Below, one piece after another: positions 22,693 through 27,611 of a stretch of DNA of 64,000 bases. Below the pieces are notes generated by a model that did not search any database, was not told the origin of the DNA, and was given only the letters and a program-made list of their open reading frames with translations. Each line of letters begins with the position of its first letter. The stretch's first letter is position 1. The position numbers and the translations under genes are program-made. Source of the stretch: Octopus bimaculoides (taxonomy: Eukaryota); the NCBI RefSeq assembly GCF_001194135.2, contig NC_068989.1, forward strand, positions 10,376,565-10,440,564. Reading direction: 5' to 3'.

Positions 22693-22770
22693 CTATTCTT
22701 TATCAACCTTGCCAGTTGATTGTTTGGAACCTCGGAGACGACCAGTACGACGGGCAGCAATAAGACCGAC
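22693..22770 (-). CDS. RPL8: RPL8 coding exon 6 ([25 protein letters not shown])
   Basis: TTTTCCAG acceptor, TAG stop at 22695-22693. Confidence 0.96.
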   Translation of the reverse strand, partial: VGLIAARRTGRLRGSKQSTGKVDKE

Positions 22771-25026
22771 CTGGAAAAGAAAAGAAAATTCCATTTAGAA
22801 TACACCAGAATGAAAAATTCATTACCACTGTCTCAAAAGAACGGAGAAATATGCACATTAAATTTACTGCTTCCAATATATACATGGTCAATCAAGTGAA
22901 AAAATTCTCGAATAAATAAAATTCACAAAGAAATTACTTTATCAAAGCTCGAAGGTCAAACCCATTTCCTATTTCGAAGTTTAAATCATCAACAAAATTC
23001 AAGTCAGTGAAACATTATTCACCACCCTCAAGACATTTTCGACTACTGTCAGCTTCAACATAAGCAATTATTATTAATTGAGAAGATCTTAAGAAAGCAA
23101 GCTCCTCTAAGTCTCAATCACAAGATATCTCTTGAAATAAAAATATTTAAGTAACCTAGTTTCAGGCTAGAAGACTTACATTTTATTTAGCATGGAAAAA
23201 TTAGGTTTAACTACATTTATCTACATTCAAGTAATAATACCTTATGCTGGATTATAGCAACCACAAACTGACAAGCTAATAAAACTGATTCCAGTCAACA
23301 CACTCACAGTATTAAACGTCTACACCAAAAGTTCAGGTCAAAGTGAAGAATTTTGTTACTCATCACAGCATGTCATTCTTCTCTGGGTTTTAATCACTGA
23401 CTCGTCAAAGATGGTGCATCATCTTCTAGATTACATCAACTAGCGCTTGTATTTCTAAAAAGGCACGTGGTTTAGTGGCTACGGTATTTGGCTCGTGATT
23501 GTAAGGTCACGAGTTCAATTCCTAGCTGTGTTGTATCTTTGAACAAGACACCTTATTTCACACAGCTCCTGTCCACTCAGCTAGTATATAGGAGTTGCAC
23601 CTGTAATTCAAAGGTGCCAGCCTTGTTGCACTATCTCCCTGATAACTGTATTAAGGATACACGTTTGTGGAGTGCTCAACCACTTGCACATTAATTTCCC
23701 AAGCAGGTTGTTCCGTTGATCAGATCAACTGGAACACCTGTGATTGTAAGTGACAGAAAGAAGAGTAAGGGAGCTTATAATTCTGAAAGAAGCCCAGTGC
23801 CAAGGGTTTCAGAGATGTTAGCAATGCAACTGATGTTAGGCAGACCAGTCATAAAAAAAAAAAACTGTTGGGAGAAAGACAAAATCTTACCAGGGAGATA
23901 TCCCTCTGAATCCAGCCATCTCCATAAAATGGGAGAGAGGGGGGGGGGGAACAGAACATGCAGATTTATTTTATCCTAGTATTCCATTCCATTCCTTTAT
24001 GGTATATCTGTTTTATGCACATTGAAGTCCACTTGTGCATACAATTCTAACAAGCTAAATAGTAGCTAATAAACCATTTTCTAAGATGACCAATCAAAAT
24101 TTTATTTACTGGAATGAGACTTGCTTTGAGAGAAAAACCCTTTATCGTGTACTAAATTCTCAATTTTAAAATTCAAACATATAGGGTGGGGGTGTATTAT
24201 AGAAATATAAAAAGATCAAATGACCCTAAACAATATCTGCTGCATTTGTTATAACACTAATTAGATTCCAGTCAACATACTCAGGGAATGAAGCTATCAA
24301 CACTCAAAGATTCAGGTCAAAGTGAAGAATTATTTTCCTCATCACAGCATGTTTGGAAACAAATCAAAGAAATTATGAAGTTGAATAAACACTTCAAAAT
24401 AAGCCTACTACTTCCCCCACTCAGCTGAAGGGGGTCTTGCTTGATGACCTCACTAGTGCTGGTGCCATGTAAAAAGCACCCATTATACCATAAAATGTTT
24501 TGGCATTAGGAAGAGCATCCAGCCAGAGAAACCATGTCAAAGCAGACATTACAACTTAGTGCACTCCTCTGGCATACCAGCTCCCGCCAAACCATCTGTC
24601 CCACGACATCAAGGAAAATGGATGTTTTTTTTTAAAAAATAGCACAAGACACCAAAATCAGCTTCAAATAATTCTACCCATCCAGGTGATATCAATCAGT
24701 CTAAATTACATATTCAACCCCTTAGCATTGAATCCGGTCATATCTGGCCCAAATATTCTACCTATTTAAACAAATAAAAACAACCAGATCCAATCTCTCA
24801 CACCTACCCTGCAATGCCATTTGTAAAACATACAAATGCACCATTGAAATCTTGAAGCTACAAGATGCGTCATTAATTAAAAACACAAATACATAAGCAA
24901 TACTTTTTACAGAGAAATCTGAATGCAAAAGTGTTGAGTAACCTAAGTGACCAGACTTAACAGACGGCCTCATCTGCATTAATAATATTCCCTCCAATGC
25001 AGGCCAGTGACAACCCCAAGAGTAGA

Positions 25027-25058
<32 letters not shown>

Positions 25059-27611
25059 GTACCTTTCGTCCAGCTGATGTATCTCTCCGGACTGTTGAAG
25101 CTTTACCAATATGCTGATGGTTACCACCTCCGTGAGGATGCTCAACAGGCTGAGGAAGAAAGAAGGAAAAATATAAATTAATAAGTGATCAATAATACAA
25201 AAAGAGATTCAAACAGCAAAATCTGTAACTCAGAATTGATGTTTGGAAACTTACATTCATAGCAACACCTCGGACTTTTGGCCAACAGTTTTTCTTAGCT
25301 TTGTATTTATAATACGCACGACCAGCTTTCAGAAGTGGTTTGTCTATACGACCACCACCAGCAACAATACCTACAAATATCACAACAATCATGTGTAAGA
25401 CAAAAATTAAAATAAAAAGCATAGGTAAATATTATGAACTGAAACTGTTTAGTTACATTGAAGCTCTGACGTCTGGGAACTAACTTGGTAAATCATCATC
25501 ATCAAAACACCCACAAAATTATTAACCATTGTGCCAACAACCACCATGAGCTCCACAGCTCCCATGACTTTCAGAAACAAATAGGGTGGGGGTGTATTAT
25601 AGAAATATAAAAGGATTAAATGACCCTAAACAATATCTGCTGCATTTGTTAAAACACTAATTAGATTCCAGTCAACATTGAAGTCCACTTGTGCATACAA
25701 TTCTAACAAGCTAAATAGTAGCTAATAAACCATTTTCTAAGATGACCAATCAAAATTTTATTTACTGGAATGAGACTTGCTTTGAGAGAAAAACCCTTTA
25801 TCGTGTACTAAATTCTCAATTTTAAAATTCAAACATATAGGGTGGGGGTGTATTATAGAAATATAAAAAGATCAAATGACCCTAAACAATATCTGCTGCA
25901 TTTGTTATAACACTAATTAGATTCCAGTCAACATACTCAGGGAATGAAGCTATCAACACTCAAAGATTCAGGTCAAAGTGAAGAATTATTTTCCTCATCA
26001 CAGCATGTTTGGAAACAAATCAAAGAAATTATGAAGTTGAATAAACACTTCAAAATAAGCCTACTACTTCCCCCACTCAGCTGAAGGGGGTCTTGCTTGA
26101 TGACCTCACTAGTGCTGGTGCCATGTAAAAAGCACCCATTATACTATAAAATGTTTAGTTACATTGAAGCTCTGACATCTGGCAACTGACTTGGTAAACA
26201 CCCACAAAATTAATCATTGTGCCAACAACCACCTTGAGCACCTTTGAGCTCCCATGACTTTCAGAATCATGGAACAAACTACCTGCATCAGTTATTAGTT
26301 GCCAAGGCACTGCATCCTTTAAAACTTCCATGCTTCCTGAAATACACCAACACTACACCCGATATCCCCCCTCCATATGCATGCACATGTATATCACGAC
26401 TCATACACTATTCACTTTCCTGACTTTTGTGCATAATTCTATGTTACTACACACGCACTTTTGATAAGTTGTAGTGCACCTGAGCACTATACACAATTTC
26501 ATTATTATTATTATTTAATTGTAATTCTGTTAAAGTTCACTGCCATTGTACCAGTTAATTTAATGAAGAACTTATGAACAGCAAATGCCGAAATTTTTCT
26601 TGTAAAAAGCAACATGCCCAACCGCACAAACCATATTTGTCAATGTCTACTCACCTATCATAGCACGATTGGTTGAAGGAACAACTTTCTTTGAGCCTGA
26701 CGGTAGCTTGATGCGAGTCTTCCTGGTTTCCAAATTGTGTGAAATAACTGTAGCATAGTTGCCTGATGCTCTAGCTAGCTTTCCACGGTCACCTGTCTTC
26801 TCTTCCACACTACAGATAATGGTACCCTCAGGCATAGCACCGAGAGGAAGAATGTTTCCAACCTGTAGTGTAGCTTGAGAAAAAGAAAAGAAAAAAAAAT
26901 CATAAAACTTTGAACAAAAACATATTTATACATTTAAGCATACATTCGGACTGATAAAAACAACTGTAGCATTTATGCTCTGCGGCAGCTTCAAAACAAT
27001 ATGGGTTTCCAATATTGGTACAAGGGAGAGCTGATCAACGAAATGTAGGCATCCCTGCATTACAGCCACCCCATGTATGGGGTTTCACGTTTACAAAAAC
27101 TGCAAAGTATGACTACCAATTTTAGGATACTGTCTGTAATTTTGCCGTTTTTAAACTTATCACATTAGTGAAGGGGCAGTAAGGAATGAAAACTGAGGTG
27201 CAGACAAATTGCCATGTTCTTGGGAATGTAAACAAACCAGCACCAGTTGTCAAATGCTAAGAGAGAAATAAAAGACAAACACACAGGTTCCAAATTTCCA
27301 ATTACCAAATCCACCCTCAAGGCATTGGTTGCATCTGGGCTATAGTGGAAGACACTAGTCCAAGGTTCTATGCAGTGAGATTTATAGTGAATTTCATATG
27401 GGAGAGAAATATCAACAACATTGCCGAAACAAGGCTAGAAACATCTACAGTGAAAACTATGACAAAGAGAAAATTAAGTCAACCATGTAAGAAGCTACAC
27501 CACTGACTGCTCAGACCCTATTTTTTCATAACTTTAATGTAATGCTTAAAATGGTATGGCTCCTGATTAGATAAAGGACCAGATGCAACAAAACGTACAA
27601 ACTAAGGTAAT

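Follow-up and report, generated by a model that had tools for sequence, protein, structure and literature searches.

Predicted SNORD37-type box C/D small nucleolar RNAs in introns of the RPL8 gene of Octopus bimaculoides

The RPL8 locus and its three intronic elements

The DNA analysed here, a 64-kb window of the Octopus bimaculoides genome (contig NC_068989.1), contains the gene RPL8, coding for ribosomal protein uL2, and the introns of this gene harbour three short elements that are very probably intron-encoded box C/D small nucleolar RNAs (snoRNAs) that belong to the SNORD37/U37 family. A translated search with human RPL8 placed the coding part of the gene on the minus strand and divided it into six exons. 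Each of the five introns is delimited by GT-AG, and the spliced coding sequence of 780 nucleotides (nt) gives the exact 259-amino-acid uL2/RPL8 protein. A search with the protein pointed to Octopus, and the whole gene from ATG to stop recurs letter for letter at locus L002 of O. bimaculoides (GCA_001194135.2, CM046609.1) but in neither O. vulgaris nor O. sinensis. The exon map and the translation bear out an earlier reading made from the letters of this DNA (the sequence-only reading), which had named RPL8 as the host and whose span of 23298-26008 takes in all three copies. The gene and the three elements occupy the following positions in the window:

22693-29370, minus strand: coding region of the host gene RPL8 (uL2), 6678 nt from ATG to stop
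29370-29233, 28506-28365, 26873-26655, 25370-25255, 25149-25063 and 22770-22693, minus strand: RPL8 coding exons
23297-23374, minus strand: copy 1 (type A), predicted 78-nt box C/D snoRNA in RPL8 coding intron 5
24274-24353, minus strand: copy 2 (type B), predicted 80-nt box C/D snoRNA in RPL8 coding intron 5
25930-26009, minus strand: copy 3 (type B'), predicted 80-nt box C/D snoRNA in RPL8 coding intron 3, with the same sequence as copy 2

All three copies lie in the sense orientation of RPL8. The window contains precisely three instances of the 14-mer TTCTTCACTTTGAC, every one on the minus strand (23337-23350, 24316-24329 and 25972-25985), and the composite pattern TGATGA-N9-TTCTTCACTTTGAC-CTGA was likewise found three times, compared with none in 100 dinucleotide-preserving shuffles. 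Copy 3 is separated from the 5' and 3' splice sites of intron 3 by 645 nt and 557 nt, respectively. Intron 5 is 2292 nt long, and its 3' splice site is 1501 nt from copy 2 and 524 nt from copy 1. The parts of the three copies were assigned as follows:

23366-23360, minus strand: C box GUGAUGA of copy 1, with guide at 23350-23337 and D' box CUGA at 23336-23333
23307-23304, minus strand: GUGA (non-canonical) at the D-box position of copy 1; terminal stem formed by 23374-23368 with 23303-23297
24345-24339, minus strand: C box of copy 2, with guide at 24329-24316, D' box at 24315-24312 and D box CUGA at 24284-24281
26001-25995, minus strand: C box of copy 3, with guide at 25985-25972, D' box at 25971-25968 and D box CUGA at 25940-25937

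Every copy presents GUGAUGA, 9 nt, the guide UUCUUCACUUUGAC and CUGA in this order, and a C'-like box of the form UGUNGA, followed by the D box, lies 26-30 nt downstream of the guide/D' block. In copies 2 and 3 the C'-like box reads UGUUGA and the ends are joined by a terminal stem of 7 base pairs (bp), AACAUGC/GUAUGUU. An alignment of 13 sequences from eight species, described below, revealed that the C, D' and guide blocks are invariant, including UGAUGA of the C box and CUGA of the D' box directly 3' of the guide, and that the C' box (UGUNGA/UGAUGA) is conserved. In this alignment 82% of the cells of the 7-bp terminal stem are paired, versus 67% in shuffles, and none of 500 shuffles reaches 82%; compensatory changes were found in six of its seven pairs, and slid controls were paired in 18-51%. 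In the annelid Ridgeia the stem appears, as read by eye, to be lengthened to 12 bp. Folding of single sequences gave z-scores of -0.39 and +0.74, a measure that is uninformative for C/D snoRNAs. The sequence-only reading had described three C/D cassettes with the guide beside D'. This holds for the C box, guide and D' box of all three, but copy 1 is without a canonical D box, so that two of the three are fully canonical.

A further feature was observed in copy 1 of the cuttlefish Sepia (locus L004, 6205-6282), where the stretch GGAAGAAAU downstream of D' is complementary to the guide of the same RNA; the vertebrate Rfam consensus of SNORD37 has UGAAGAAA. In these RNAs the guide could be masked in a hairpin while the RNA is free. 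The Octopus copies carry no guide-complementary stretch downstream of D'.

Family assignment and the predicted 28S target

For each of the three copies the best match in Rfam was SNORD37 (RF00440), with 33.8 bits for copy 1 and 30.2 bits for each of the other two, and with E-values of 0.0016 and 0.013 in a 10-kb search. The gathering score of this family is 45 bits, and the copies of the window were detected at permissive thresholds. Their C box, guide and D' box align base for base with the SNORD37 consensus AaUUCUUCACUUUGACCUGA, and the low scores are explained by the diverged 3' half of the molecule, from C' to D. Orthologues from other species scored 37-46 bits against the same model (Ridgeia 40.7, Sepia 43.0 and 42.6, Mya 45.9); the score of one copy of the clam Mya, above the gathering score and obtained in the same host gene, ties the octopus series to the SNORD37 family. 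The SNORD37 identity proposed in the sequence-only reading is thus supported by the top Rfam match in three of three copies and by a guide and D' box identical to the consensus; the check that it had suggested with the Rfam model returned this family as the top match each time, although below the gathering score. Several other weak Rfam matches, namely those to snoU30, Z105 and Z221 overlapping the three copies, SNORD87-like at 26178-26226, U6-53-like at 25395-25504 and many to mir-297, mir-466 and mir-1277 on TG/TA microsatellites, were judged to be due to chance or low complexity.

The nucleotide five positions upstream of D' is a U, which stands opposite the second A of GUCAAAG, in agreement with the application of the D+5 rule in the sequence-only reading. 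Human SNORD37 is hosted by EEF2 and targets A3697 of 28S rRNA (PMC3766210), just as that reading had stated, and fish SNORD37 is placed within the coordinates of EEF2 (PMC3276181). Arabidopsis AtU37 (Am2204) has been listed as the counterpart of U37 (Am3697), with no equivalent in yeast (PMC3511168). For the octopus copies the predicted 28S target is GUCAAAGUGAAGAA, with the equivalent of A3697 opposite the fifth nucleotide. The 24-nt target segment GAATGTCAAAGTGAAGAAATTCAA was found in at least 120 metagenome contigs, and in one of them, contig L014 from an unrelated eukaryote, the match lies inside a full-length LSU_rRNA_eukarya match. A full-text literature search for the 28S target sequence gave no match.

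The pairing of the guides was examined with the 28S sequence of L014 as a stand-in for that of octopus. The D' guides of all 11 spiralian copies tested form 14-16 uninterrupted pairs with it (position 2181), Watson-Crick throughout except for one G-U pair in the B copy of Argonauta; the pairing beats every shuffle in nine of the 11 copies and is well above the shuffled mean (8-9) in all of them. From annelid to octopus the guide stays the same, and it equals the vertebrate-based Rfam consensus, which argues for an unchanged 28S target. The elements upstream of box D showed complementarity to the same rRNA no better than that of shuffles, and the RNAs therefore resemble SNORD37 in being single-guide snoRNAs. 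A candidate second guide in the D-side element of type B, which has an 8-nt match by eye to the 28S segment AAUGAAGC, was rejected, being neither above shuffles nor conserved in Argonauta.

Relatives across Spiralia and the history of the copies

The RPL8 loci of other species were searched for the guide, for Rfam families and by means of a covariance model based on the 13 copies, against which copy 1 and copy 2 score 87.1 and 88.5 bits, respectively. SNORD37-type copies are present in nine RPL8 loci, and the five coding introns of RPL8 occupy the same protein positions in all spiralians examined. The copies are distributed as follows:

O. bimaculoides (window): three copies, B' in intron 3, B and A in intron 5
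O. vulgaris and O. sinensis: two copies each (B, A), intron 5
Argonauta hians: three copies, A in intron 1, B and A in intron 5
Sepia (Acanthosepion) pharaonis: two copies, both in intron 1
Liolophura sinensis (chiton): one copy, intron 3
Mya arenaria (clam; two gene copies): two copies, introns 1 and 2
Ridgeia piscesae (annelid): one copy, intron 1
Branchiostoma, Dendronephthya (octocoral) and Priapulus: none found in RPL8

When the RPL8 introns of O. bimaculoides were compared with those of Argonauta or Sepia, the only alignable islands, besides T-rich tracts beside the exons, were the 80-90-nt snoRNAs. RPL8 hosts a SNORD37-type snoRNA in octopus, argonaut, cuttlefish, chiton, bivalve and annelid, in contrast to EEF2 in vertebrates; EEF2 hosting is a vertebrate and non-defining feature of SNORD37, and the host in the window is RPL8. 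Since RPL8 hosting is common to molluscs and an annelid, the host difference from vertebrates is old in Spiralia. The inspection of RPL8 introns in other molluscs that the sequence-only reading had recommended thus produced copies in Sepia, Argonauta, the chiton and the clam, and host-gene switching with local amplification, as that reading had proposed, stands in outline but not as an event of octopus. The guide, Rfam and own-model searches revealed no SNORD37-type copy in RPL8 of amphioxus (Branchiostoma), octocoral or Priapulus, and the host change may have run in either direction. A protein search with EEF2 returned, among the 120 matches listed, vertebrates and one fly only, and a study of sponge ribosomal-protein introns mentions neither RPL8 nor U37. 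The retention of a snoRNA family while its intronic location drifts has been described before (PMC3511168).

Amplification within the gene can be followed in part. Copies 2 and 3 reside in a 482-bp duplicate, whose members and associated repeats are:

24019-24500, unstranded: intron-5 member of the 482-bp duplicate, carrying copy 2 and its flanks, about 150 nt upstream and about 250 nt downstream (gene sense)
25675-26156, unstranded: intron-3 member of the 482-bp duplicate, part of an insertion of about 605 nt relative to O. vulgaris
25575-25678, unstranded: extra 104-nt partial repeat of the snoRNA 3' flank, 96% identical to 24175-24278 and 25831-25934
25442-25579, unstranded: diverged direct repeat flanking the intron-3 insertion, with its partner at 26148-26269 (78.6% over 140 nt); single copy in O. 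vulgaris
22965-23033, minus strand: possible additional paralogue in a decayed state, GUGAAUAA ... UUUCACUGAC-UUGAA ... UGAUGA, lacking a D box

The two members of the duplicate are identical at 481 of 482 positions, with the single mismatch at 24489. The insertion of about 605 nt (gene coordinates 3212-3816 of O. bimaculoides) has no collinear counterpart in O. vulgaris; copy 3 is absent from intron 3 of both O. vulgaris and O. sinensis, and of the species compared, O. bimaculoides alone has the 482-bp duplicate. No poly(A) was seen at the ends of the intron-3 insertion, which together with the upstream and downstream flanks carried along with the snoRNA indicates duplication at the DNA level and not retroposition. 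The bracketing direct repeat of the insertion target has diverged while the core is nearly identical, as would be expected of an older insertion with a recently homogenised core. On this reading copy 3 was created by DNA-level duplication within the O. bimaculoides lineage, and gene conversion has probably homogenised it afterwards.

Copy 1, which is 83% identical to copies 2 and 3 over 89 nt, is an older paralogue, and the three copies are accordingly not independent events. Types A and B occur in Argonauta and in all three Octopus species (A-A identity 88%, A-B 77%), and type B has its own C' region common to Argonauta and Octopus. The arrangement of two snoRNAs in intron 5 therefore predates the Argonauta-Octopus split, and the local amplification is specific to O. 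bimaculoides only for the copy in intron 3. The departure from one snoRNA per intron, pointed out in the sequence-only reading, is unusual by the standard of mammals, for which one per intron is the norm, but common in flies, which often have more than one (PMC6619189); the octopus arrangement is consequently not new in kind. Conservation of the A/B pair with all boxes intact in both members suggests that both intron-5 snoRNAs are matured, and their relatively long terminal stems would fit an assembly independent of splicing.

The putative relic at 22965-23033 matches our covariance model weakly (19.6-20.9 bits, E 0.04-0.09) and recurs at the corresponding position of the final RPL8 intron in three Octopus species (counterparts at L001 16773-16851 and L005 9924-10002). 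With its degraded C box GUGAAUAA and shortened guide-like stretch UUUCACUGAC-UUGAA, it may represent a decayed older paralogue. Another own-model match in the window, at 42834-42886, consists of a C box only and was set aside as probably due to chance.

In Argonauta hians the A copies of introns 1 and 5 (locus L003, 3687-3767 and 7051-7131) are 100% identical over exactly the 80-nt snoRNA while their flanks are unrelated, which points to short-tract gene conversion or RNA-mediated copying. Mya arenaria has two RPL8 genes on two chromosomes (L007 and L008) which code for the same protein and each carry the same two snoRNAs in introns 1 and 2. The RPL8 introns of other species also gave sub-threshold C/D matches to further families, three of them SNORD95-like in Ridgeia (L009, 3433-3502, 6276-6345 and 7576-7645; 28-30 bits) and one snoZ266-like in Priapulus (L133, 6460-6541; 32 bits).

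Several other features were observed in and around the octopus gene. A homopolymer of 27-28 nt (25029-25056), whose plus-strand A residues correspond to U in the pre-mRNA, lies a few bases within intron 5 beside the donor of exon 5. On the plus strand of the same intron, antisense to the gene, the stretch 23461-23535 (ggtttagtggc ... cgagttcaattcc) is tRNA-like and resembles the head of a short interspersed nuclear element; neither ARAGORN nor Rfam called a tRNA in it, and the ARAGORN scan gave no tRNA. A gene of the Piwi family, with Piwi_N, PAZ and Piwi domains and a product of 897-926 amino acids, is arranged head-to-head with RPL8 from about 32309 onward on the plus strand, about 2.9 kb upstream of RPL8 in O. 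bimaculoides (L002, 1-62), and adjoins RPL8 in O. vulgaris as well (L001, 1-9195). An inverted repeat at 32361-32660, with mirror-image open reading frames on both strands, matches mir-1258 with 43.7 bits, where the gathering score is 74. Rather than a microRNA it is probably a hairpin of repeat origin.

Interpretation and comparison with known systems

The identification of the three elements as box C/D snoRNAs of the SNORD37/U37 family encoded in RPL8 is carried by what can be read directly from the sequences: the box anatomy, the positions in host gene and introns, conservation in two phyla, covariation in the stem and complementarity to a conserved eukaryotic 28S segment. For transcription, processing, snoRNA-protein particle (snoRNP) assembly and methylation we infer the following course. 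The snoRNAs would be transcribed within the RPL8 pre-mRNA, and the C/D kink-turn together with the 7-bp terminal stem would recruit the core snoRNP proteins Snu13, Nop56, Nop58 and fibrillarin, after which the remaining intron would be trimmed off. The 14-nt element just upstream of D' is predicted to pair with GUCAAAGUGAAGAA of 28S rRNA, whereupon fibrillarin would 2'-O-methylate the second A of GUCAAAG, corresponding to human 28S A3697. As to history, all the sampled spiralians have RPL8 as the host; the intron-5 A/B pair is old within Octopoda, and the intron-3 copy originated in the O. bimaculoides lineage.

Some observations weigh against this identification. Rfam in its default setting, at gathering thresholds, gave no match in the window, all three copies scoring below 45 bits. 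Copy 1 has GUGA at the D box, a C-to-G change at its first position, and in the kink-turn structure such a change removes the Watson-Crick C-G pair of stem II; in O. bimaculoides it may weaken snoRNP assembly. The three copies stand 524-1501 nt away from the 3' splice site, far beyond the optimum of box C/D snoRNAs of vertebrates, which lies at roughly 70-90 nt. The near-identity of the intron-3 segment, finally, raises the question of an assembly error that would have created copy 3. Two segments of 481/482 identity placed 1656 bp apart in one gene, and the lack of the segment in the assemblies of two sister species, would fit such an error. The insertion, however, comes with a 104-nt partial repeat (96%), a flanking direct repeat (78.6%) and one internal mismatch, unexpected for a simple mis-join, so that an assembly error is unlikely here and less likely than a real insertion with gene conversion.

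The sub-threshold Rfam scores, along with the repeats present in RPL8 introns, might also be taken to mean that the elements are a chance similarity or a functionless fragment of a repeat element. We consider this scarcely credible in view of the composite pattern, absent from all 100 shuffles, and of conserved islands with stem covariation in otherwise unalignable introns across two phyla. A role mainly in cis, on splicing or transcript stability of RPL8, instead of or beside guiding rRNA methylation, is improbable. Cis roles of intronic snoRNAs in their host loci are among the subjects reviewed (PMC11028025), and the stable association with one host across Spiralia would suit them; yet the invariant part of the elements is exactly the rRNA-complementary guide and the boxes, and the occupied intron varies among species, which argues against a cis role tied to position. 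A greater, though still minority, possibility is that only some of the copies work, copy 1 being in decay, copy 3 a young redundant duplicate and the dosage mainly provided by type B. The D-box substitution of copy 1, where the orthologues from O. vulgaris, O. sinensis and Argonauta retain CUGA, is in line with this, as are the identity of B and B' and the decayed-looking relic downstream in the same intron, which suggests birth-and-death turnover. In copy 1, nevertheless, the C box, guide and D' box are still perfect and the terminal stem is paired, and a single substitution could be a sequencing error or a tolerated variant.

A broader proposal, that RPL8 has been the fixed host of U37 across Spiralia since before the mollusc-annelid split and that the snoRNA has meanwhile been repeatedly duplicated and moved among introns 1, 2, 3 and 5 with its paralogues evolving in concert, appears to us evenly balanced between true and false. 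Concerted evolution is indicated by the Argonauta identity confined to the 80-nt snoRNA and by the near-identical 482-bp tract of O. bimaculoides. If true, U37 would offer a clear example of intron hopping constrained by the host gene, and it would follow that cephalopods routinely process two C/D snoRNAs out of a single long intron, at a great distance from the 3' splice site.

Through our analysis an ancient snoRNA family gains members from cephalopods and other spiralians, members which, by their scores below the gathering threshold, escape default Rfam annotation, and it offers a concrete prediction of one 2'-O-methylation site in octopus 28S rRNA. It also contributes a comparative pattern, with the same host but different introns in two phyla, concerted paralogues and two snoRNAs kept in one intron across Octopoda, and thereby a useful datum for the view that snoRNA mobility is a 'constrained drift' (PMC3511168). 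The findings are ordinary biology of a well-known family and leave the current understanding of snoRNA biology unchallenged.

The octopus copies can be set beside several known systems. Human SNORD36A/B/C, hosted by RPL7A, form a multi-copy snoRNA family of a ribosomal-protein gene, and here as there several paralogues of one C/D family occupy different introns of one such gene. The mammalian SNORD36 members are each alone in their intron, whereas two copies share intron 5 in Octopoda and intron 1 in Sepia. In this respect the octopus intron resembles the intronic snoRNA clusters of Drosophila, with two or more snoRNAs in an intron (PMC6619189). Arabidopsis AtU37, a plant counterpart of U37 by listing, guides modification of the equivalent adenosine of the large-subunit rRNA, which implies that the U37 family and its target are ancient (PMC3511168). 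There is close likeness to human and vertebrate SNORD37, with which the octopus copies share the box C/D plan, a guide and D' block UUCUUCACUUUGAC-CUGA identical to the consensus, the same predicted 28S A3697, a guide on the D' side only, a comparable length (65-80 nt) and an intronic location in a translation-related housekeeping gene (PMC3766210; PMC3511168). They differ from it in their host, RPL8 and not EEF2, in their number, two to three per gene and not one, with two in one intron, in a diverged 3' half that scores below the gathering threshold, and in their large distance from the 3' splice site.

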